Shown: positions 3,445 to 63,369 of the stretch, in pieces
How the letters are laid out: each line of letters begins with the position of its first letter
How positions within the stretch are numbered: the first letter of the stretch is position 1
DNA from: Takakia lepidozioides
Taxonomy: Eukaryota; Plantae; Bryophyta
Reading direction: 5' to 3'
DNA: 64,000 bases
Assembly: GCA_030704615.1 (NCBI GenBank)
Contig: CM060734.1
Coordinates: 63,736,001-63,800,000 of the forward strand
The notes under the pieces: generated by a model
What the model saw: only the letters and a program-made list of their open reading frames with translations
Database searches by the model: none
Told to the model about the DNA's origin: nothing
Program-made: the position numbers and the translations under genes

Positions 3445-6400
3445 GTGGAGTACCTGGAGGCAGCAGAGGCACGTTGTGCTTTTAAAAGCCTGGCCTACAA
3501 ACGCTTCAAGTAGGGCTGTCTTCATCTTGTGATTTTTGTTCTTCAGTTTCTCTGGGTAGTCCATGTATGTGTGTCCCCCCACCCCCCCTCTCTCTCTCTC
3601 TCTCTCCCTGGTCTGGGTCAATGGCCACAAGGCTACGGCAAACAACGTCTGATGAGTACATTCTATCTCCCTGCCCTCTAGGAAGCCTACTGCCATTGGG
3701 TGGACGTGATATGGGAGTAGATAAATATCTCTGTGACTAAATGCCAGCCTTGTGACCTCGTGTCTTTGCTTGTTTTGACCTGAAGCACCCTGCTTCTGGT
3801 ACGGTAGTGCATTCAGTTTAGTTGGAGAGTTTGGGGCCTCTCCCTCTTTAGAATATGTCTATGTGGGCCATTCCCTGCAGCTCTTTTGCAGTGTGATCTC
3901 TGAATGGTAACAAGCGGACCCCTACGGCTTGGGGGCAGCCCCTTCACCCACAAGGGGCAGTTGCATGCTCTGTCTAGCATGCTTGGCACTTGGGCTAGGG
4001 TTGGTCCTTGAGCTTAAACTTATAGCCTGCGACATCAATCAATCTAATATGCCATGACGACAACAACACTCTCCAGGGTGATTCCTGGGAAATGGTTACT
4101 TATGCCAAATCTAGGGCTTCATGTATAGTTTCCGGGGTGAATCCCAGGATGGACGATGTGTCTTTTAAAACCAGCTGCTCCAGCTTGGGGTTGGATTAGC
4201 TAATGGCTCGATCACGCAAAGCTAGACTGTAGGATGATACCATTGGGCCTTTTGGTGAGGACAAGCTGAATTATAATGGAAGACAGTTAATGAACTGTCT
4301 GGAAGAACTTCAGCCTTTGACCTTGAACAATAGGTCAAAAGGAGACCTGCAATGGACTCATGAGAAGCGAAAAGCCGAGACACGAGTCCTCTATAAAGAG
4401 TGCTGCAATTCGAAAGTCAACAAAGAATTGTGGGCTAGGTACTACCAGTTCCGCAAAGATATCAATCAGCTTGTAAGGTTTCAGAAGAAATTATATTGGG
4501 ACAAGTTATACAGTGAAATGAATTCAAATCACCAAGGTGGTAATGACAAGAGATTCTGGTTGGCCCTTCAACGACTGTACAAGCCAAAAATTTGTCAGCA
4601 AGTACAAGCACAGAGGACTAAGGGTGCAGTGGTGACTTCAATGGTTGACATTGTCAAAACCTTTGAAACTCACTACAGTATCCTTGGCAGAAATTCTAGG
4701 GCTAACAGTGAGGGGTCTTCTGAAGAATGGAAGGACAGTTGAAAAAACTGTTCCTAAGATTCAAGACAGCCCGGATGAACTGGGAATATATTTCAAAGGG
4801 TTACAAGTTACAACACTCCCATTAGTTCTTCTGAGCATTTAAACGGATGTAAAGCTGGTGGACCTGATGGCATAGTCAAGAGCTTATCAAGCACAGGGGC
4901 GACCCCATGATAGAGGCCCTTGTAGTTCTCTTTAATCCTATCTGGAGGACTGAAATGATCCGCTTTCGCTGGCGACAGGGGGTCATTGTGAATCTACTCA
5001 AGAACGGTGACAGAGAAGAGCCTGAGAGTTATTGAGGCTGAGCCAAAAAAGCCTAGGCCCTTTTGGGGCCGAGTTATTGGGCAAATCACACACAGCAGAT
5101 TGATGCTTGTGTAAAGGGATTTCTAGAGGATATCTGGAAAACTTGGATAAATTGTCTGCTCCAAGGTAAGTCATACTACCGTCGTCAGCCCCTGACAAAG
5201 GTAGTTTCTGTCCCTTTGTGTTCCGCTCAAACTGGGCGCTGGTCAAAGGCCACAAGGCTATGGCAAAGAACATCTTATGAGTATAGTCCCTCTCTCTCTC
5301 TCCCCCTGTCTTCTCTATCCCACCCTTCACTCTTGAAAAGTCTTATGGAGTGACGAGATCTTAACACAGACTTCGAGCAGATGAAAATGCTTTGCGCAAT
5401 GGTTTTGGCATGACTGCAGGAATGTGCCACTCTACCTGGAGTGGGCACCCGAAAGCTTGTTGACTGTGGATGGAAGACAAAGGTTCACCAAAGGAGCACA
5501 GGGGGCAATGCGTGAGAACGAGGTGAAGCGTGCTGTGATGGAGCAGCAGTTAGCAGGTGTACCTGATGATAATGATGATGCTGCTCAGGTGTGGAGTCAA
5601 ATGTTGTAAATGATGAGGTTGTTGGGTTTCCCATTTGCAATGATTTGAACCCTCGTGAAGACTGTAACGCCCGAACAGAGTCGTCTCTTCGTTCTTCTCT
5701 TCTGCTCATGTATCAGGTTAAACATAAGATCACAAGAACTTGAAGGGTGAATAGATGACGATATTGAGCATACCTCTTGTGCAATTTCGATGGAGGCTGG
5801 CAGGTTTGAAGCTTTAAAGAAAGCTTTTTCAACTATTCTCCTCATCAATGACTCATCCCTCTGTGTCACAAGGCTTCTTCAAACTTATTACGTATTCATT
5901 TGATGTAGTACTAGACTGGACATCAGACAATTCTTGGGGCAGCAAGTAGTCATGGGGTGAGCAACTTTGATCCAGTACATCAATGAGTCGCCCACGTCCT
6001 CACATACAAGATATAGCTAGTGTCAGTATGTGGTGGTGATGTGGAAAGTTCGGTAAAGGGCCTCTGTGTCATTGGGACAAGAACAGCTCAACACTGCAGT
6101 GCTATCTATTATATCTATGCAGCATTCAGGGTCAGCTTCTTATAATTCAAGGGAAGGATATATTGACTGGAACTGGAACCCTGAATGGGTCACTGACCCT
6201 GCACAGACAGGAAAAGGTAGAGGCAGCATAAAATGAGACTTTCATGCTGACTGTCTTGAGGCAACGTGATATGACTTCTTGAGATCAACTTGTTGAGCAT
6301 GTGACTCACATGGTTTGTGGTTGTTCATTGGGGTATGATCTGGGGCAGGCACAGTCACTGTTTGTGAAGAATCTCAGCTTTTCCACCACAGAGCCATCCC

Positions 6401-8660: not shown

Positions 8661-9641
8661 ATTTTGTACTCGATTGGTGGTTCCGCGAAACTGAGCCATG
8701 TACATCCCAGAAAGTTATGCGATAGTACTTTCTAAATCTCCCTCAGCCTCCCTAAGGCACCATGGCCTGTCTGGGACAACCTGGGCGTTTACCACATCTG
8801 GACAGGTTATAACTTCCTGTGTCAAGAGCCTATGTTCATTGGTTGAGAAAAAATACTGCCACGGCGTCCACGCCGACGCAATTGTCGTTTTTCCGAGGTT
8901 TCTGCGACAGACCGGCGTCGCAGAACCAGCCAACCCCCCCCCCCCCCCCGGCAATTCCGTCGCCACATCTAGGCCCCGTGGGGCACCGAGCATCACAATC
9001 CCCTCCTAAGCGCTGTAGTGATTATACACAATATGTTGGAATTCGAATGATCAGAATGCTTCAAATTAGTCCAACATTTAGCACATCGTAGAGTATGGTA
9101 TTATCACATGCCAGTTGTACATGTTTCTCAGCAGTCCCAAATGCATGTGGCTTGATTTTACTGCAAGCGTGTGAGCTGACAGGTACGGCCCGTGAGGTAC
9201 AGCCGGAACCCCGCTCCGGCAGCCTCGTCAGCAAGCTGGACGCCCCATGTCAAATCATCCCCACCCCCCTCCAACCCCTCCACCCGCTGCCCCGCCCGCC
9301 TGCCCGGGATCTTGACCCCGCTCCACCGCTGGCCACGCGGAGATCTCCAGCCACGTGGTGGGGCCCCCCCCCTTGTCTATTGCCTGCCTGGGTGATCCCC
9401 CACCCCATATCAATCAACAGAGTATTTACCCTAAACCCTAAACCCTATAACTTTATTGGTCTGCATCACATGTTAAGATATTGCCATCACACTATGTGGC
9501 CATGGAAAAATGTCTGAAAATTTATAATAGCTCCATCCGTGCATTCTTGTGCACTTATGCAAGTCTGGATTGCAATGGATTGTGAATCTATCAAAATCTT
9601 CCATAAATCTGTAATATAACTCACTTAATGGGTGTGTACAG

Positions 9642-11159: not shown

Positions 11160-12000
11160 GAAGGGTTTAGGGTTTTAAAGGGTTTAGGATAGAAAGAGAC
11201 AAACATGTAAACATGATGACTCTAAACCTCTGTAGAATGTAAAAATGTAAGGGGAATTTGATATCCATGTAATCATTCTATCATACGTTATCCAACTTGA
11301 AAATTAAAGAAAACATTAAGAGAATGATACAAATTTACCGGAGGTAACATGGTAGTACAATAAGGTTTGGAGTTTATTATAAGTAGGGTACTACACTAAG
11401 GTTTTGGGTATATGGTTAAAGTAATGGTTTATGGTGCTAAGGGTCAAGCTTAAGCTTGGGGTAAGGATTATTAAGGGAAGGATAAAGGGAAGGGTAAGGG
11501 TTTAGGGTTTGGATTTAGGGTAGAAAGGGACAAACAAATATGGAAGACTCACACATGGTAGTACAATAACTTGGTTTGGTTTAGGGTAGTAAGTGTCAGG
11601 CTTAAGCTTAGGGTAAGGATTAAGGCCAGGGTAAAGGAATGGGCAAGAAATTTAGGGTTTGGATTTAGGGTAGTTCAAATGGACAAACAAATATAGAAGA
11701 CTCACACATGGTAGTACAATAACTTGGTTTGGAGTGTAAGTAGGGTAGTACACTAACCTGGTTAATGGTATATTGTAAGAGTAATGGTTTAAGGTAGTAA
11801 GTGTCAGGCTTAATCTTAGGGTAAGGATTAAGGCCAGGGTAAGGGTATAGGGTTTGGATTTATGGGAGTACACAAAGCTTTTTGGTATATGGTAAGAGTA
11901 ATAGTTTAGGGTACTAAGTGTCCGGCTTAAGCCTATGGAAAGGTTAAGGGAAGGGTAAAACGAAGGGTAAGGATTTAGAGGTGATGGTAAAGGTATAGTG
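11160..12000 (+). repeat. Degenerate telomere-like (TTTAGGG/GTAAGGG variants) tandem region with longer repeated units
   Basis: Many ggtttaggg, gggtaagg and gatttaggg variants; recurring blocks such as catggtagtacaataacttggtttgg at about 11350, 11555 and 11707. Confidence 0.6.
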
Positions 12001-19049: not shown

Positions 19050-20844
19050 AGATTTTATTGATCAACCACATCTTTGATTCAATGTATATTTTTGATTGGT
19101 TTTTCTATAGGTTGTATTGTTTTTCTATAAAAACTGTTGTGTATTGTGATTTCCTTTTCAATCTGAATTGACATGGAATTGTTTGCTATTTCCTTGTCTC
19201 ATCCATGCGTTTCTCCACCCCATACCTTCCCGATCCTCTGAGATACAGGCCTTCTCCGAAACTCATCTCGGGGGCTTTTTCAAATCCGACAACCTCCACT
19301 GTGCAGTGGAGGTTAACCTGTGTCTGTACATTGACGTTGTAAGTTCGATTCTGCAGGTTCATGGCAATGTTGCTGATGCCAACTTCTTGTCGGGACCTCC
19401 ATTGGAATCCTCCATACCAGAAATTCGTCCAAAGAGGGATAACATTTACACTACTGTTGAGATTTCTGTCATCGACGGTGAAGCATCATCCAGGCACTTG
19501 GCTTCCCTTCAATTGCACGACCCTCTTCTTCAGTCCATTCCTGAAAATGATGTTCTGTTGCAGGATTGTTTAGGATTGAATGTCAAAGATGAAAGCCAAC
19601 TTGACAAATGTGCAGGGGATTTCATGGACCTCACTCTACAATCCTCACCCTCCATATTAAGTGTCAAGGGTCCGCAACACACTGTTGCCTCTCTTCCCTC
19701 CTTCTCTCCCCAGCACGAAGGTTGGACAGCCCAAATCAGAAGAAGTCAGGTAAAATTACTTATATCTGAATTCTAACTCGTTCTTTTGTTTTCCTTAGTA
19801 CTGGGTCTGATGTTCTTGTTTTACTCCAGGCTAGAAAATCTACGGATTGTGACATTCCTGTCAAACGACGTCTTCATTGGAAATCTATTCCGAGGTAATC
19901 CCTTCGTTACGTGTGAATTCCATTAGGATGTGGAGTGCTCAAGGGACAATTTTCATTCCGTTCCCCTTCTCCGCAACCCTTTCGACGAGGACAAGGACGA
20001 CTTCAATTGCAACTTCTCGGCTTCCCGACCCTGCAGTGTTCGCGCAATGTTCTGCACCGAGGAAGCGGAATAGGGCCCCCAAACCATTTCCATCTCTTCT
20101 ACAAATCGGTTCCACCGGAGAGAAGTCCTTTGTCAGAGACAAAGCAGACTCGAGGAAGAAAAGGAATACCTCGGACATCCGGGGTCTCGTCAAAACACGT
20201 CCATTGGGATGCCAAGCCCGCCAGCGAGACTTCCCAATAAGGCGAGATCGGTATTATTCGATCATTTCTCCACTTTCTTCTTTTTTCTGTTCGTTTGGTT
20301 ATGCACTAATTAACTCCATCTTTTCTCACCATGCGGGGATGCAGCACGATACCTTCATCAATTTCCCTCCGTACAAGGTACTTTCCTGAACCTCCACTTG
20401 GCAGTGGACGTTCCTCTTCTTAGCAATATTAACCCTCCTCTTGAAACATTCCAAGCCCACAACATTGTGCAGTATTTTGCCATTTTCTACACAATCGTGT
20501 TGATCTTCCATACACTCAATCATTCTGGGTCGTGGGTCTTTTTCATGGCAGAAACACTAATGTCAGTGTGTGATTAACCTGCTCAGGATAACTTTGTCTC
20601 TCATCCTTTACATGCAACAGCAGGGAAGAGGAAATGGATGTTGTTAATTTTGAGTGTCAACGGACTCCTCTGCTACCGGCCACCCCCAACCGGCGGTGAA
20701 CTGTTTAAGGAGAAATTTCCTTTGCAGACAACTTAAATATGGGACGAGGTATTGTAAGTGGCAGAGTAGCGTTGCTGCTACGATCCACTGAGATTCGGCC
20801 TCCTGTCCCAACGATTTGTTATCAAACTATTTTTTGGGGAGCAG

Positions 20845-27011: not shown

Positions 27012-28350
27012 ACGATACCGGCCATCCTTCAGCGCGGAGGGATTTCAAGCAATGTGGTGAGGGCACCTTCTTCTTCGACCTATTTCAGCCTGTTTTGCCT
27101 TCTCATCAGACTTAGGCTATGTTTCAATCTCTGTCTACTCAGCTGCGTCGTGGTGGTTCTCATACCGGCCATCCTTGAGCGCGGAGGGGTTTCAAGCAAT
27201 GTAGTGAGGGCACCTTCTTCTTCGACCAATTTCAGCCTGTTTTGCCTTCTCATCAGACTCAAGCCGTGTTTCACCTGCTCAGCTGCACCGTGGTGGTTCT
27301 CACAGACCAATCCGACATTACCTGACTACAGACACAAGCAACACATATAAGAGGTCCTTGTGGGTTGATGGTCGGTCAAATCCTCCATGGGTCATGACAC
27401 AAGGTCAAGGACAATGTGGTGAGGGCACCTTCTTCTTCGACCTATTTCAGCCTGTTTTTCCCTCTCATCAGACTCGGCCCTGAGATGCATATTGAATTCT
27501 GTAAGTTAGCTCATTGCAGGGTGGATTCGTGGTCGTTTGGAATGACTTTGACAAGTTACTGCCGATGTGGCAGCAGGAAAGTATCAAAAAACAGATAACA
27601 GAGATGAGGAGAAGCTGGGACAATGGAGACATAAAGGTGAATGTCCGTTGGACTACAGATAGAAGCAGATGCAATTCAGAATCGGAACTCTGTACGTAAT
27701 AAGTGGGGTTGGGGTGTTTGCTGACAACTGCAATCGCAAGGTGTGGCTTTTCTTAATGTACGATGTGAAGAAGTTTGTGCATCCTGCAAATGTGGGCTCT
27801 TGGCTCCTGTTAGTACCATGATTTGGTATTCTTATGATGTTTACAAGGTTCTCGGGAGAATCAGCTTGGTCTTAGCAGCCCGTATTTCAATCTCTGCCTG
27901 CTCAGCTGCACCGTGGTGGTTTTCACAGACCAATCCGACATTACCTGACTACAAACACAAGCAGCACACTCAAGAGGTCTTTTTGGGTTGATGGTCGGTC
28001 AAATTCTCTATGGGTTATGACACAAGGTCAAGGACAATGTGGTGAGGCACCTTCTTCTTTGACCTATTTCAGCCTGTTTTTCCCTCTCATCAGACTCGGC
28101 GCTGAGATGCATATTGAATTCTGTAAGTTAGCTTTTTGGGTGGATATTTGTGACTTTGACAAGTTACTGCCGATGTGGCAGCAGGAAAGTATCCAAAAAT
28201 AGATAACAGAGATGAGGAGAAGCTTTGGAATGAACACTTTCTGACCCCAGTCAATAGTGGGACAATGGAGACAAAAAGGTGAATGCCTTTTCGACTACAG
28301 AGAGAAGCAGATGCAATTCAGAATTGGAACTATTATAATTAGTAGGGTTG
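27012..28350 (-). repeat. Nested local duplications containing an ARM-repeat-like coding fragment
   Basis: The block encoding NRLKLVEEEGALTTLL recurs at about 27050, 27195, 27413 and 28036; 27265-27720 is duplicated at 27885-28360. Confidence 0.55.
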
Positions 28351-56240: not shown

Positions 56241-56917
56241 ACAACTGCTTCTGTTGGATCTCAGTTTGAATGGAATATTGCCTCATTCTAGGAGTTCGTG
56301 TCGGGCAAGCTAATTTAGCCCGGACTACACGGTTCCCCCTGTCGTACGCCCGATGGTTGGAGAGAAGGGACTTGGTTGATCCTCCCTTGAGTTCATCTTG
56401 AGCGATCAGAGGACTATGGGCATGCGCAAGCCTCTGCCGACCTAACCTTCTCGTCGATGACCTTATGCGGTAATCCCTCCCATTCTTCCTTAGAGGTACG
56501 AACCTCTTTTTGAAGGTGGGGCATATAAGTTTTCCAACTAGGGGTTGAGACTTGACCCTATGTTTGTGAGTGCCTTGAGCGCATGCTTGCCCATAGTGAG
56601 CAAGATTTTTGTCGCTAAACAAGGAGAAGCAAACATAAAAAAGCTTACGGTTGGAACGAAAGTGCCTCATTCTTCAATTAGAGAACCTTATCTCGTGAGG
56701 GCGGGAGTCCTTGCATAAGACATAATAGTCTTATTGCATCCCTTTAGGCACAATAGGCGCACTTTGTATGCATTTGTCTTGATTTCCATTGCATTTGTAT
56801 TTGGGTCCGAACCGGCCCCCCTTAATTTTTACTGTGTCTCTTTCCAGTATTTTTTCTACTTTTTGTTACCTTTGCAAGCCTTTGCTAACCACCCTAAACC
56901 CTAAACTCATTTTTCCC

Positions 56918-59105
56918 ATGGCGGAACTAGCAGGTAACAAACGTCCATGTCCTAGCTTAGGCGTCGGCCCTTCTCATGCATCCGCGTCTTCTTCTTCTAG
57001 CATGGATATCTCCATTCCTCCCCCTTTGCTTGCATTTGTGCATACATCGGTCAAGGAATTCAAAAGTCTTAGGCATGAGCATGAAAAAACTTCCAAGTAC
57101 CTTCAAAAATTGCGAGTGCAATTCGAAGAAGGCACCATACCCAACTCCCTTAGAATGAGTCCTCCTAAACTTCAAATAGGAGATCCCGAGGCCCAATCTG
57201 TCCTTGATGCGAGCCTGGCCGAATGCACAACCACATATCGGATCAAGTGCTTTGAAGCACTCATCAAAGCCAAGAATCTCGACTTGCTAGCTTGACCCAC
57301 AAGCTCGAGCAATCGAAACCGGTCTTTGAGACTCGCCTCTCGGATTTGATTTCGCCTTTACGATCCTTAAATTTGATAGGTGACAAATCTAAGTCTTCCA
57401 TTGAGTCGTGGCATCTTCATCTTAGCAATCTCTTTGTTACTCATGTAGATGCATTTCTTATTCACAAACAACTTTCCGACGTCAGCAAGGCCGCGGCTAT
57501 CGCCGCTCCCAACGTTGCTCGGGAAGGTGCTATGGAAGAAGCGGAGACCCTCCTTGTGGAACCGTCCATTGCTACACTCGTGAAACGCGAGGTGGTCAAG
57601 GAAGTCCTCAAGGAGGTGAAGAAGGTGGTGAACTCCATCCAGGTGAAACCCAGAAGCTTGGGACCAAACCGGCTAGTAAGCCTAAGACGAATCTTGGCGG
57701 AAAGTCGGGAAACGGCAAACAGCAAAAAGGTATCCGGGTCTCCACCCGTTTTGTTGCGTCACCTACCTCTTTCAACAAGAGGTCAGGCCCGAACCGCACA
57801 ACCGGTTCTGGTACGGGAGGCCGAAAACCTTCAGTGAGGGTCAACGGTAAACCGGCCACGACGAAGGGTTCGACGACGACGACAACGAAGACGAAGCAGC
57901 CATACGTACCTCCTCACAGGCGTGGGGGCGCACGAGGAGTCTCTTCTGGTACCCGCTCGTAGACCCGAAGACTTACACTTTGTTGCTCTTTGCTAGGAAG
58001 ACTCCCTCCCAAGTGGAATGCAGGGTCACCAACAGTGCTATCCAAAACTATAGCAAGAGGGTTCTCTCCTTTGCGGAGCGACAACTCCTGGGCCTTGGTC
58101 TCAATTACATTCCTCGTCCTCTTTCCCCTTCCCGATCTTCAATCATCACCGAATTCAACAATTTTGCTCGAAGCTTGAGGTTGCGAACGTTCTTCTCCGG
58201 CAAAGACAATGACGAGGTTCATCTTTGGCGCGTTCCAAATCCATCATTCAATCCGCCAGTGGAATCTCAACCGCTCAAGGCCATCATTCGAGAAGGTAAT
58301 GATCTTTTGTCTAGCCGTTTGGATCGAATCGCCCGCAATGCACGACCTTGTCTGCCGAGACACTTGAGACTTGCTCTCAAAAGATTGAGGACGGATCCGG
58401 ACCTTGTCATCAAGCCGGACGACAAAAATCTTGGTCTTGTGCTTATGGACAAGTCTTGGTACATGCAAGAGGCGATGCGGCAACTCTCAGACACCGAAGT
58501 TTATCGTCCCGTGGATTCCGTACCGTGGGAAGAACTTTGGTCGAGGTTGGAGGTGCTAGCTTGCCATCCAATCTACAGGTTTGTGATCTCCACCAAAGAA
58601 TGGAATTACATCCGCCAACGCCCTCGGTCGTCCATGGACTTTCGAGCTTGTGCTTTGTACTTCATTCCGAAGGTGCACAAACCCGTGCTTGTTGGAAGAC
58701 CCATTTGTTCCTACAACAACTACATCTTCGAGCATGCTTCAATTTGGCTCCATCACCAACTCCTTCCGGTACTTCTCAAGGAACCCACTCATTTGGTTGA
58801 TTCTCTCACACTTCTTCGAGAGGTTTCCCAACTCGAGGTCCCCTCGCATGCTCTTCTTTTTACGTTTGACGTGGAATCTTTATATCCCAGCATCATCACC
58901 GAGCTCGGCTTGTATGAGCTCGAATGTGCTATTGGAGGTAATTTCACCAAACACAAAAAAGACCTGATCATGACCCTCGCTGGATTAGTCTTGAAACACC
59001 ATTACCTTGAGTTCAATGGTAGTTTTTGGCACCAAATTCGCGGGACCGCAATGGGGAGCAATTTTGCAGTTGTTTATGCTTGTTTGTTCCTTTGTCGGTT
59101 GGAGA
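56918..59105 (+). mobile_element. Penelope-like element copy A: helical/basic ORF1 (56918-57962, two 1-nt shifts) overlapping an RT ORF that is truncated after motif B'
   Basis: GTIPNSLR N-terminal motif; RT LGLGLNYIP, VIKPDDKNLGLVLMD, YFIPKVHKP..GRPICS, FTFDVESLYPSI, QIRGTAMGSNFAVVYA; no GIY-YIG seen. Confidence 0.88.
57707..57756 (+). promoter_or_regulatory. Candidate -1 programmed ribosomal frameshift signal
   Basis: G GGA AAC heptamer, 6-nt spacer, then a stem-loop; the -1 frame is the RT frame. Confidence 0.6.
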
Positions 59106-59660
59106 TGTACATGGAGTTTAGGGTTTAGGGTTTACAAAAGAGTGGAAACAAATACATGTAGCAGTGCAACAGAGTCCGAACCGCGAATGCACCAGGTGCA
59201 TTAGTAGCAAAGTGCAAACAAGTTTTTAGGGAGGCCAGTTATGGACACCTTAGAAAACTTGTAGAAATATCTAGCCTGTGAATCAAAACTAAAAGAATCG
59301 ATCCTGAGACACAAAAAAACTAGAATAGAACAGAGTGGAAGTGATGTTGCAACGTTCTAAAATGCAAATGCAAAGATATGCAAGAGGCAAGTGTGTGTGA
59401 TGAAACTAATTCACTGTAAGGACAGGAGAATATTAACCTATTTCTAAGAAAGAGAATAGACACACTAAAGAACAGTCTTAGAAGGAGATCTAACATGCAA
59501 CACTCGAAAAGGAGTTTAAAACATGCACTACAATAGACACAAAGCAAATGAATGCAATGAACTATGCAGAAGATCTAATCTAAAACTCAACAACAACAAC
59601 AACGCCGCCAATGAGACAAAGAGACAAGAACACAAGATGCAGCAAAACGAATCTCTATGA

Positions 59661-59704
59661 TCCCCAAACTAGTTTCGCTCAGCGCGTGAGCTCATCAGTG
59701 GGAA
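59661..59704 (-). ncRNA. Minimal type-I hammerhead ribozyme
   Basis: Minus strand: TTCCCA CTGATGA GCTCA cgcgc TGAGC GAAA C ta G TT / TGGGGA; complete core, 6-bp stem I, 5-bp stem II, palindromic short stem III, GUU cleavage triplet. Confidence 0.82.
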
Positions 59705-59744
59705 AGAGAAGGAAAAGAGATACAATGTGCACCCCTCACCCCGC

Positions 59745-59751
59745 TTATATA
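59745..59751 (-). promoter_or_regulatory. TATA box upstream of the hammerhead
   Basis: TATATAA on the minus strand, followed by a pyrimidine-rich tract and the ribozyme about 40 nt downstream. Confidence 0.5.
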
Positions 59752-61190
59752 CTGCGGAAAGTGAACTTGTCTCGGGGGGGGGGAGAGAGAAAAAAATACC
59801 TAATGGATGGAAAACATCCAAAATTGTCTTGGCTGGAGAGATATCCAACGCATGAAAATCTAGATGAAAAACATCCTAATGTTCTCTCCAAAATGGATAA
59901 TCATCCAAACTAGAAGCTAACTACATGTCTCAAATACAACTAGCCTCTACATTTGTAACATAGCACGAACTAGATAGGAACGCAAGTTCCGTGCCCTCTT
60001 CCAACATACCATAGGTCTGTCAAAGGACGCTAACTGCGGAACTTTCAAAAAGCCCTCATGAAGTTTAGGGTTTAGGACTCCCTCAAAGCTTAGAGCTTGA
60101 GTATAACGCGAATGCTCAAGTTTCAGAACCAAGGGGGACCGCTTGCCCGTCAACTTACGAGTGGACTCTGAAATCAACAGTGTAGCACGTTGTGCATAGT
60201 TACAAAGCACAAAACACTCCAAGATAAAAGACTTTGGATAGCCTCGATCACGCAGTCGCTCATAGAACAGTTGCCTGATCTCAGAAAAACTTGCCCGTGT
60301 GCTCTCCCTCAAAGTGTAACGTCGTAATTCGCCAATGATGAATGCTCGTTTTTGGTGTCGTGGATGACACGAGGTCCATGGCAAATACTGGTATTTGTTG
60401 AGTGCCTTTTGATGACATCTTGAAGATAAAATCCCATGGTTGACAAAATCAACTCCCTTGAAGAACTGAATATCAAGAATGTCAACCGTAGACTCAGAGA
60501 TTACCCTTTGAATCCGAATTGTGGGACTAAGAGAATTGTATCCATCGAGCCAAGCCTCCAAACTTGCCCGAGATCCTGCCCAAATTCCAAATCCATCATC
60601 GATGTATCTCTTGTAGTATAGAGGCCACATGCCTCCTCCAGCACCAACCAACTCTCTTCTAAGCTGCAAAGAAAGAGACAAGCATAAACAACAGCAAAGT
60701 TGCTACCGATTGCCGTGCCTCGGATCTGATGCCAATAGCTTGAACCAAATTGAAGATAGTTATTCTCCAACACCATGCGAGAAAGACTCAGGACGAATCT
60801 TTCAAACTGAGGTGACTTGAACTTGTCGGCAATCATCTCCTTCAATCGTCGAAGCCCGTCCCCAGTAGGAATGCTAGGATACAATGACTCCACATCAAAG
60901 GTGAACAAAAGCACGTCGCCAGGAAATTGCCTATCCGACAGATCTTTCAACAAAGATATAGAATCTATCAAATGGTTATCTTCCTCAAGCAGAATGGGAA
61001 ACAGATGGTGATGCAACCACTTGGATGCGTGCTCAAAAACATATCCGTTGTATGAACAAATCGGCCTCCCGACCACCACAGGCTTGTGCATTTTGGGCAC
61101 GAGATAAAACATGCAGGGTCGGTAGCCCCCTTGGGGCTTGAACGCCAAAAAGTCCCTTGTCTGCCCGTCAATCAAACCAATGGCTTTGTC

Positions 61191-62000
61191 GATTGGCATG
61201 ATGAACTCTACCCCATAAACCAATGAAAGAGGGTATGTCGAGTAGTTACCTTATGGGTTGTGCGAACTGCCTACAAGGCCGAAATTAACTTGGTGTCCCA
61301 ATCCCTTTTGTGCTCCCTGATTGTCTTGGAGAGAATGTTGCACAGGGTTTGGTTGGCGCGCTCCACCTGCCCACTCGTTTGTGGATGATAAGGGGTCGCA
61401 TTGTGATGCTTGATGGAGAATGCGTCGTTGATGAAGTGAGATCATCTGTCACTCACTATCTCTTTTGGGCATCCGAATCGGGAAATGATATATTCATAAA
61501 TGAAAGAGGCGGTTACCTTTGTGTTGGATCTCTTAACCGCTTTGGCTTCTGCCCACTTGGTCAGGTACTAAGTGGCTATAATGATGTAGCGATTTTGTCG
61601 ACTCGATGCAGGGTGCACTTCCCCTACATAGTCGATCCCCCACTTCTCAAACGGAGCAAGGGGAAGAGTGGAACTAATGACATTCCGAGCCTGTTATTTC
61701 GTTTGGCGTACCTTTGACAAGAGTCGCATTTTCGCACATGCATGTGCGCATCTTTGAACATGGAGGGTCAGTAGTATCCTACCCTCAAAGCCTTCTGCAC
61801 TGTGAGCCGCCTTGCAAAGTGTTCTCCACACATGTTATCATGGGCTGACTCTAAAATCTGGGGAACCTCCTCCGGGGTGACGCATCGGCTCAAGAGTCTA
61901 TCCAATCCCCTTCTATAAAATTGCCCTCCCACAAGAGCAAACTTCATGTTGCGCAGTCGAAGCCTACGTCGCGCATGTCGATCCAATCCTGGGGAAATTC
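61191..62000 (-). mobile_element. Degenerate non-chromovirus gypsy integrase fragment
   Basis: RCVTPEEVPQILESAH...EHFARRLTVQKALRVGYY, CDSCQR, PKEIVSD, LVYGVEFIMP; joined directly to PLE copy B. Confidence 0.8.
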
Positions 62001-63369
62001 CAGGGTGCTTAAATATTGAGCTAAGTGTTCATGGACTCGGCTCATTTTTGGTATGTCATGCATAAATGAGCTAGGCCCACTGCTATATGGTTGGAATCTC
62101 TGGATGATTTTTGGTAGGTTTCTAGGGGCAATTTATTGCAGCTGGGTACCAAAAATTGGTAAAAAGTCAAAAAAGGGCTTGGGAACTTAAAGGTTAAATA
62201 AGATAGAGGTATTTAATTCAGACCTAAAATCTTTCACGATGAGTACAAATTAATTTTGAAAATGTCCACCACCTTGACATAAAAACTTGCGTCGGTTCTA
62301 AGTCACCTAACAAAAAACTTTGAAACCTTATGATTTTTGAATCCACGGATTCTTTGCTGCATTGGAATCCACTTTTAATTTGCTAACAAAAATATACAAA
62401 AACTTGACCATTCTAATAGTAATAACTATGCCCAGTGATTAATATATCATTTATTTTTGTACGATCACCTTACTTTTGACAACAACAAAAAAATTAGGTT
62501 TCACTTCAATCACAAAATCGGAAACTATGCTCTATTTTCGAACGATTGCCATTGTGGAATACCTCACAGACGAGAGAGAGAGCGTGATACTGCATATGAG
62601 GACTCCTGCCTAAGTCGCCGAGCACAACCGCTCTCCGCCTTTGACTGGTCTGCTTGCGCTTCCCGAACAACGATCGAAACGAAAGCCATGATCAAGATCC
62701 GCATCCTCCTCCTCCATGGCCCTATGCACGGAGAGCTAGGGTTGCAAGAACCCCTATGCAATCGGAGACGGGGAATTGAGCAATAAATGCTTGGAGAGGA
62801 AATGTTGGGGTGACAGAAACGAAATACATGAAAATGTGGCGTGTGATTGCAGTGGAGAATCAAAACAAAAACAAATGAAAAACAGGAGAGGAACTCAAAG
62901 ATTGCAAGGTGGTATGGAATTGGAAAGAAGAGCACCGACTAAAAACCTTGAGGCGGAGTTTCCCTTGCAACGCAAAGACAGACATTCTCCAGTCAGCAAG
63001 TGGAGGGCCCGTTTCCTGACATGCACGAGGTGGCGGTGCCCCGTTATGAGATCTGCGGTTTGCCGGTTTAGTTGGGCTCTAAGAAAATTGAAGGGCAGCC
63101 CGCCCCTGCATGCAGCCCGCCCCTGCATGCAGCCCGGCTCCAAAATGTAAAAATCACCCAACTATTTGTGCAACTTTGTAGGTCACTATATATCAATGTC
63201 ATACATTAAATTTTTTGACTTGTACATTACTAAATAATGGTTTTCATCTTTTACTCCCTTTGTTCCAAAATAAAAAGCACTTTTGATTTCTTCATGTATT
63301 TGTACCTCTTCATATATTTGTATTCTTCACGTATTTGTATTTATTATTTTATTTTAGTTTACTGTATTG

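Follow-up and report, generated by a model that had tools for sequence, protein, structure and literature searches.

Past the end of a Penelope-like element (PLE) reverse transcriptase (RT) in this window (the window being the whole 64-kb stretch of plant DNA analysed here), a short sequence reads like a hammerhead ribozyme set behind a TATA box. This raises the questions of whether the motif is a genuine ribozyme conserved in a family of elements, to what kind of element it belongs, and how it might act with a third helix that has no loop. We approached these questions by reading the motif base by base, by comparing it with relatives that accompany homologous RTs, and by weighing the readings that compete for the same observations.

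Read directly, the minus strand from 59704 to 59661 contains a complete type-I hammerhead core. The two strands of the 6-bp stem I are UUCCCA (59704-59699) and UGGGGA (59666-59661), and between them lie CUGAUGA (59698-59692), a 5-bp stem II (GCUCA at 59691-59687, loop CGCGC, UGAGC at 59681-59677), GAAA (59676-59673) and CUAG (59672-59669). U16.1 and U17 fall at 59668 and 59667, and the predicted cleavage site lies between 59667 and 59666. Every core position carries a hammerhead residue (C3 U4 G5 A6 N7 G8 A9, G12 A13 A14, the pair A15.1-U16.1 and an H17 that is not G, all at 59698-59667 on the minus strand). Helices I and II are formed and helix I is the open one, which is the type-I topology, and covariation among relatives backs it. 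Helix III is the palindrome ACUAGU with zero loop nucleotides; a single motif therefore cannot close it within one molecule, and its pairing needs a second copy. Beyond a UCAU bulge (59660-59657), stem I continues as an outer 5-bp helix of UCUCU (59709-59705) and AGAGA (59656-59652), which is also present in the monomer fold of the window motif, and stem I of the relatives is likewise long with an internal loop. A long, interrupted stem I of this predicted form resembles that of many natural type-I hammerheads. A sequence-only reading of this DNA had described the same core, stems, coordinates and orientation with copy B, all of which are borne out on the minus strand; its distances of about 240 nt from the copy B stop codon and about 40 nt from TATATAA measure 243 and 40 nt to the start of stem I. 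The features of the locus are collected in Table 1.

Table 1. Positions of the ribozyme, its module and the surrounding element copies in the window
Feature	Start	End	Strand	Basis
(CCCTAAA)2 tract, 12 nt (56906-56917) upstream of the copy A ORF1 start codon	56892	56905	+	pattern search
Copy A: ORF1 56918-57837 (two frames) and RT N-terminal half 57977-59116, cut in the RT core	56918	59116	+	ORF table, tblastn
Telomere-type tract TTTAGGG TTTAGGG TTTA	59117	59134	+	pattern search
Non-coding tail of ~530 nt past the predicted cleavage site	59135	59666	-	position matches 5' UTR before ORF1 in related tandem units
Full ribozyme including outer stem I helix	59652	59709	-	reading, monomer fold
Hammerhead core with inner stem I, stem II and loop-less palindromic helix III	59661	59704	-	reading, relatives-only covariance model
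TATA box TATATAA; 40 nt to the start of stem I, 53 nt to CUGAUGA	59745	59751	-	reading
3' untranslated stretch, RT stop codon to TATA box	59752	59946	-	ORF table
Copy B: 5'-truncated PLE RT, no endonuclease, frameshift near 60621-60654, stop 59949-59947	59947	61220	-	tblastn, A1, ORF table
Telomere-like tract inside the copy B RT frame; sense strand encodes L-N-P-K-L	60064	60077	+	pattern search

We used covariance models to examine whether the motif stands out from the rest of the window. None of the Rfam hammerhead models reached its gathering score there, the best match being Hammerhead_HH9 at 15.8 bits against a cut-off of 52. HH9 also stayed below this cut-off in three relatives (L006, L007 and L009, 21.6-21.7 bits), and nothing was found with Rfam at gathering score in 20 more distant loci. 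Our model R2 was built from seven metagenome-contig relatives (alignment A7) with the window sequence left out. When R2 was run against both strands of the 64-kb window, its sole match was 59710-59650 (-), at 48.9 bits and E ~1e-12. A second model, R1, includes the window sequence, and the covariance-model searches detected no second hammerhead in the window. The sequence-only reading had looked to hammerhead models for confirmation; the Rfam models remained sub-threshold, whereas the model built from relatives supplied it.

The relatives came from a search of metagenomes with a four-sequence alignment of the RT C-terminus, which returned at least 80 loci (L001-L080); we applied our own hammerhead descriptor and model R1 to the listed loci. 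Among the matches listed, six carry the same ribozyme 241-363 nt past the RT stop (L001, L002, L003, L004, L005 and L008), and R1 places it just upstream of ORF1 in L006, L007 and L009, with a cut copy at the start of L062. The RT C-terminus of ribozyme-bearing loci is 38-47% identical to that of copy B. In the 68 loci of greater distance (L013-L080), neither the descriptor nor R1 returned a convincing hammerhead; a 22-bit match in L035, with the core UUGAUGA and no stem II, was set aside.

Across the ten distinct rows formed by the window and these relatives, the catalytic core (CUGA-N-GA, GAAA, U16.1 and U17) is invariant except for the free position 7. Standard pairs are formed in 94% of pair cells, compared with 85% in shuffles and at most 45% when the partners are slid; these counts lean towards structure because the alignment was model-fitted, and the raw sequences show the same pairs. 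Five pairs have changed on both sides. Stem II is 100% paired, includes two of these doubly changed pairs and occurs as GCUCA/UGAGC, GCUCU/AGAGC, GCCUA/UAGGC and GCC/GGC, while stem I is 83% paired and also has two. Helix III is ACUAGU in the window and in L002, L004, L005, L006, L007, L008 and L009, and ACCGGU in L001 and L003; its centre has changed from UA to CG with the palindrome kept. This is the one kind of compensatory change seen in helix III, and such a change has roughly a one-in-four chance of preserving the palindrome. The loop-less helix III is common to all of the four to five diverged families found, which argues that it is old and maintained and is no recent deletion.

To which element the motif belongs can be judged from the RT. 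Searches by tblastn with homologues identified only two RT pieces in the window, belonging to copies A and B. These pieces have homologues of about 600 aa in Cryptomeria, Ginkgo, Selaginella (where protein P0021 is a clear homologue of the window RT) and many further assemblies. The ~600-aa homologues carry precomputed PF28514 and PF26215; local Pfam models assigned no family to the window RT pieces or to P0001. The RT core motifs can be recognised in alignment A1, together with the boxes G-x-(K/N)-(F/Y) and ADKNLG. Weaker RT matches include animal RT proteins and one protein bearing GIY-YIG, and by homology this more distant match ties the RT family to PLEs. PF01541 (GIY-YIG) is absent from 66 of 67 homologues, and the copy B frame shares its C-terminal end with the 600-aa homologues and has no endonuclease domain. 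Because it lacks an endonuclease and is accompanied by telomere-type repeats, the element is placed with the telomere-attaching PLEs. Among endonuclease-less, hammerhead-bearing plant elements, Chlamys PLE-X of spike mosses and Chara is marked by a conserved cysteine motif at the N-terminus and, ahead of the RT, by a zinc-finger-like CxC motif (PMC8557442). We rejected this identity, as no CxC motif is visible in A1; nor is there a conserved cysteine pair in the N-terminal 200 columns of A1, which include the full N-terminus of copy A. Among the PLE clades, only Naiad and most Chlamys lack a reported hammerhead; Athena and Coprina, which have no endonuclease, are among those that carry one (PMC8557442).

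The arrangement of the two copies is informative about how copy B arrived. Copy A has no ribozyme of its own. Copy B, whose RT homology spans 61220 to 59953 (-), lacks ORF1 and about 190 RT residues and is joined at its 5' end to the remnant of a Ty3/gypsy integrase (~61230-62100); being 5'-truncated and frameshifted, it is dead. The telomere-type tract at 59117-59134 connects the broken end of copy A (59116) with copy B, which follows in antisense from its 3' end; in the sense of copy B, the tract is a run of CCCTAAA repeats. Double telomere-type repeats were found five times in the window by pattern search, against 0.03 expected. One of them precedes the 5' end of copy A and, like the junction tract, has the orientation expected for G-strand priming. 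The stretch that runs from the tract inside the copy B RT frame to the one at the end of the tail measures 961 nt. The in-frame tract encodes LNPKL, and the motif LNP(K/T/E)L is present in several homologues. The tail itself has no ORF1 homology and no other copy in the window. No doubled telomere repeats occur in L001-L009. A broken end, G-strand repeats and then an antisense element beginning from its 3' end are the geometry expected from reverse transcription primed by a telomeric G-strand. Endonuclease-less PLEs are known to attach to G-rich overhangs, aided by reverse-complement telomeric repeats and hammerheads (PMC8557442, PMC6431247), and the junction matches their published behaviour.

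We examined what precedes and follows the ribozyme in the same set of loci. Among the matches listed, a TATA-like box (TATATAA, TATATAT or ATAAAAG) occurs 38-53 nt before CUGAUGA in 10 of 10 ribozyme copies found, against background frequencies of 1.29 per kb for the sense strand of these loci and 0.22 per kb in the surroundings of the window site. A TATA-like box in this 16-nt slot across four to five diverged families is far from chance. A T/C-rich tract (59796-59774) precedes the TATA box in the window, and C/T-rich tracts are usually found upstream of the boxes in relatives. A bacterial promoter and terminator scan of the window, a tool irrelevant to this DNA, returned nothing useful. TATA promoters have their start sites some 25-35 nt past the box, a spacing that would put the transcript start at stem I or just within it.

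On the other side of the ribozyme, ORFs start 195-424 nt past the predicted cleavage site in L003, L004, L005, L006, L007 and L009 (~236-239 nt in L006, L007 and L009), and ORFs downstream of the relatives' ribozymes are homologous to copy A ORF1 (blastp 4e-9 to 8e-6). L009 has the module as a direct repeat on both sides of its unit (64-249 and 4724-4908, 79%), and in L003 and L005 units of ~5 kb follow one another head to tail. The unit layout suggested by these comparisons is TATA, ribozyme, 5' UTR, ORF1, RT, 3' UTR, TATA, ribozyme, and this pseudo-LTR and partial-tandem layout is that described for PLEs (PMC8557442, PMC4209133). The pseudo-LTR pair is seen in relatives; in the window, the 5' truncation of copy B leaves the module present once, on the 3' side.

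Taken on these comparisons, the motif is likely to be a type-I hammerhead that forms part of the pseudo-LTR module in a plant PLE which lacks an endonuclease, is associated with telomere repeats and is Coprina-like by its features. The first proposal of the sequence-only reading, a type-I hammerhead with palindromic helix III in the pseudo-LTR of a PLE, is supported, with relatives carrying TATA box and ribozyme both after the RT and before ORF1.

The promoter activity, cleavage, need for a dimer and telomere priming that we infer for such an element would combine as follows. The TATA box would start transcription at or just before the ribozyme and drive the downstream unit in the manner of a terminal-repeat promoter. 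Read-through or tandem RNA would be cut to unit length by the ribozyme, so that U59666 would carry a 5'-OH and U59667 a cyclic phosphate. Two ribozyme copies may pair through ACUAGU into a double hammerhead, upon which cleavage would follow. Finally, CCCUAAA tracts in the RNA could pair with telomeric G-strand ends and prime new copies; such CCCUAAA-primed copying would be the reason why the copy B tail ends on the (TTTAGGG)2 that caps the broken copy A. A promoter at the 3' end of a telomere-attaching element has a parallel in Drosophila HeT-A, which differs in being a non-LTR element that encodes no RT, carries no ribozyme and has poly(A) at its 3' end. The HeT-A 3'-end promoter reportedly drives the downstream neighbour in head-to-tail arrays, as Danilevskaya et al. 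are said to have described in 1997.

Cleavage probably requires a dimer, because helix III cannot close within one motif. In cofolding, dimers were favoured over two monomers by 5.6-12.7 kcal/mol for the six motifs tested, the favoured pairings not always being the active ones. Minimum-energy folds included no clean double hammerhead, and several showed a longer AAACNNGUUU duplex or a fold that occludes the core. U17 and U1.1 are invariant and extend the palindrome to 10 nt. Catalysis does not require either identity, and their invariance may reflect a role in dimerisation or switching. PLE hammerheads whose helix III is small and palindromic have been proposed to act as dimers (PMC4209133, PMC7761336); this form was described for animals, rotifers included (PMC4209133).

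The closest known systems share different parts of this arrangement. The telomere-associated PLEs of Selaginella moellendorffii (Cervera and de la Pena 2014, PMC4209133; Gladyshev and Arkhipova 2007) likewise have a plant host, an RT without GIY-YIG and a type-I hammerhead in a terminal repeat, and stem II and core of the window motif are like those of HH9 and Schistosoma-type motifs. The Selaginella motifs are canonical, with a closed helix III, whereas the window and the relatives found have a loop-less 6-nt palindrome (PMC4209133). The portions of the published Selaginella hammerhead descriptions that we consulted make no mention of a conserved TATA box just upstream. The minimal hammerheads of animal PLE pseudo-LTRs (PMC4209133; and, via PMC7761336, Lunse, Weinberg and Breaker 2017) have in common with the window motif the type-I topology, a helix III that is short and palindromic, and proposed dimer action; they also lie in RT-flanking repeats, as the module does in the relatives. 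Unlike them, the window motif has a plant host, no accompanying endonuclease and stems I and II of more than minimal size, stem I having 6 + 5 bp with a bulge and stem II 5 bp. In the window element, a loop-less palindromic helix III is joined to an HH9-like core and stem II, and the host is a plant.

Athena and Terminon elements of bdelloid rotifers (Arkhipova et al. 2017, via PMC6431247 and PMC8557442) share with the window element an endonuclease-less RT, copies joined to or truncated by telomeric tracts, a 3' hammerhead and a frameshifted ORF1 upstream. They also differ. In Terminons, the reverse-complement telomeric tract stands immediately downstream of the ribozyme (PMC6431247, PMC12477314), whereas in the window the nearest tracts are ~530 nt downstream (59134-59117) and ~360 nt upstream (60077-60064). 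The window element also has its second tract inside the RT frame and a repeat unit of CCCTAAA and not ACACCC. Because its downstream tract is ~530 nt from the ribozyme, the Terminon 3'-end model is not directly transferable to the window element.

This distance gives room to a different cycle, to which we assign a small but appreciable probability. RNA cut by the hammerhead might be circularised as in retrozymes, or a read-through multimer might be used, and the G-strand end might prime on an internal CCCUAAA tract and not at the RNA 3' end. If this were true, internal priming would explain why the telomere-complement tract lies ~530 nt past the predicted cleavage site, why the end of each new copy is a terminal repeat of TATA box, ribozyme and tail, and how tandem arrays arise; a telomerase-like RT would then drive the cycle of a plant 'telomeric retrozyme'.

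A further possibility, and on balance an unlikely one, concerns the ribozyme itself and not the cycle. The motif might be a decayed canonical type-I hammerhead of the Selaginella kind that has lost its helix III loop and no longer works, with conservation reflecting another role, such as protein binding or a dimerisation palindrome. The alignment with HH9, its best Rfam match, would suit such a history, since core and stem II are identical and a 5-nt gap falls precisely at the helix III loop, as would the fact that the plant PLE hammerheads so far described are canonical (PMC4209133). The 10-nt palindrome (AAACNNGUUU) provided by the invariant U17 and U1.1 exceeds catalytic needs, and metazoan minimal hammerheads cleave poorly in vitro (PMC4209133). 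A relic is nevertheless hard to reconcile with a loop-less form common to four to five diverged families, and with a core that stays invariant while stems I and II covary, as selection for a folded ribozyme predicts. The same architecture is, moreover, found in animal PLEs proposed to cleave as dimers (PMC7761336, with reference to Lunse et al. 2017).

The position of the TATA box leaves some room for a reading in which it does not transcribe the element at all. It might drive a separate small ribozyme-bearing RNA, ended by a T-run ~20 nt past the cleavage site, which would activate cleavage of the element transcript in trans through the helix III palindrome. A box 38-53 nt before CUGAUGA in all copies, with a start at or inside stem I, would fit such an RNA, as would runs of at least four T within 14-50 nt past the ribozyme in the window and relatives and a helix III that cannot close intramolecularly; in L002, two snRNA-USE-like TCCCACATTG boxes precede the TATA-like box. 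The flanks are T-rich throughout, however, so that T-runs are expected, and the USE-like boxes are absent from the window and the other relatives. ORF1 begins only 195-424 nt past the module in relatives with no other obvious promoter, and the simplest role of the TATA box is therefore to transcribe the element. We consider a separate small RNA distinctly improbable and retain the TATA box as the putative promoter of the PLE unit.

The 820-bp segment around the ribozyme has TG...CA ends (59106 and 59925), and a TATA box followed by a transcript-processing signal resembles U3/R logic. The sequence-only reading had offered as its alternative an LTR with a type-I ribozyme, which it called unusual. 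On this view the segment would be an LTR, a plant LTR retrozyme or a solo LTR, unrelated to the neighbouring RT. We reject this as very improbable. Self-BLAST revealed no second copy of 59051-60150 in the window and no target-site duplication was found, the lack of which that reading had itself remarked. The left boundary, (TTTAGGG)2 at 59117-59130, belongs to the telomere-type tract that caps copy A and is no LTR terminus. The segment is continuous with the RT frame, which stops at 59947, about five diverged RT families share the module at the same place, and the sole nearby LTR-element remnant, the Ty3/gypsy integrase at ~61230-62100, flanks copy B at its opposite end. Plant LTR retrozymes (Cervera et al. 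2016, via PMC7761336) do share a hammerhead in a terminal repeat and a unit-length RNA whose 5'-OH and cyclic-phosphate ends would allow circularisation. They use type-III hammerheads, however, as the sequence-only reading also noted in agreement with PMC7761336, and they have true LTRs with target-site duplications, a PBS, a PPT and dependence on Ty3/gypsy RT, none of which is present here. The 820-bp segment is the copy B 3' UTR, the promoter-ribozyme module and the tail.

That the hammerhead strings arose by chance can be dismissed: loose CUGAUGA...GAAA...UH patterns are not rare (23 overlapping matches to the loose core in the window against 9 +/- 7 in shuffles, non-significant alone) and Rfam gives no significant match, but the independent covariance-model match at E ~1e-12 and the position, spacing and covariation kept in relatives leave this reading next to no probability. 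Judged by these comparisons, the chance reading is refuted and the window motif is a real, family-conserved hammerhead.

A hammerhead in a telomere-attaching PLE is a known arrangement, of which the window shows a version with a less usual form of the ribozyme. Although the window copy is dead, the element adds two modest new points, a loop-less helix III in a plant and a conserved TATA spacing. Telomere-associated elements were described as rare in plants in a 2025 review, which gives Selaginella as an example (PMC12477314). The conserved hammerhead of telomere-attaching PLEs now appears in a second plant lineage besides Selaginella. Models R1 and R2 detect a form of the ribozyme that Rfam misses and can be used for a census. 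Plant elements can use a loop-less, probably dimer-dependent helix III of the kind until now described for animal elements, and the strict placement of the TATA box gives a testable picture of how such elements would be transcribed and processed.

Reverse transcriptase (RT) homology in copy A, the forward-strand piece of a Penelope-like element (PLE) that holds ORF1 and the N-terminal half of RT, stops at 59116, where TTTAGGG TTTAGGG TTTA follows directly and is succeeded by copy B, a 5'-truncated PLE RT on the reverse strand, whose 3' end comes first and reads antisense. This junction looks as if one element had broken, telomere repeats had healed the break and another element had later prolonged it. 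Because the two copies lie in opposite orientations, a rearrangement is also implied. On the other side of copy A, (CCCTAAA)2 occurs 12 nt 5' of the ORF1 ATG, and neither a hammerhead nor any likeness to the copy B tail was found upstream of this repeat. The 5'-truncated end of copy B is joined directly to a Ty3/gypsy integrase remnant with no telomere tract between them; the zinc-binding H2C2 match of this remnant is weak and its catalytic core is discernible across several frames.

Features in the window and in related loci (L002, L010, L011)
Position	Strand	Feature
9250-9420		strongly C-rich stretch
9429-9449		CCCTAAA CCCTAAA CCCTATA tract
11425-11732		tandem repeat, 153 bp, 2 copies
20718-20814	+	97-nt match to eukaryotic 28S rRNA 3' end, 63 bits
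21051-21393		GC-rich 181-bp tandem repeat
27051-28093	-	CTGATGAG...GAAA strings in repeated units
56892-56917		(CCCTAAA)2 upstream of copy A
59104-59135		copy A/copy B junction
59673-59664		extended helix III palindrome
60064-60077	+	double telomere-like repeat in copy B RT
61230-62100	-	Ty3/gypsy integrase remnant
L002:3500-3545		TCCCACATTG, twice
L010:2153-4065		clustered tRNA genes
L011:2952-4481	-	clustered tRNA genes

In the hammerhead of the copy B tail, the bases on either side of the predicted cleavage bond (U17 and U1.1) are invariant in the window and in all relatives, although other bases are compatible with catalysis, and with them the loop-less palindrome of helix III grows to 10 nt, AAACNNGUUU. 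The repeated strings elsewhere in the window fit the loose core pattern, but they lack hammerhead helices and are unmatched by the covariance models built on the family hammerheads. Among the relatives, the two TCCCACATTG boxes of L002 directly precede a TATA-like box and closely resemble the plant snRNA upstream sequence element; this element-like box was seen neither in the window nor in the other relatives. Four to five tRNA genes directly follow the truncated RT 3' region in L010 and L011.

Telomere-type sequence also occurs farther away in the window. One such tract adjoins the C-rich stretch, with neither PLE coding sequence nor a hammerhead nearby, and several TTTAGGG heptamers lie inside the 153-bp repeat. 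The 28S-like match is isolated, 39 kb from the PLE, and the repeat 3' of it is possibly an rDNA spacer fragment; 28S genes are a reported target of some spike-moss PLE relatives (PMC8557442).

Within copy B itself, the telomere-like repeat is in frame in the RT C-terminus, where it encodes L-N-P-K-L; from here to the tract in the copy B tail, the stretch measures 961 nt. LNP(K/T/E)L occupies the equivalent alignment position in Cryptomeria, Selaginella and further RT homologues and, because of this recurrence, the coding sequence of RT may retain a telomere-complement tract.
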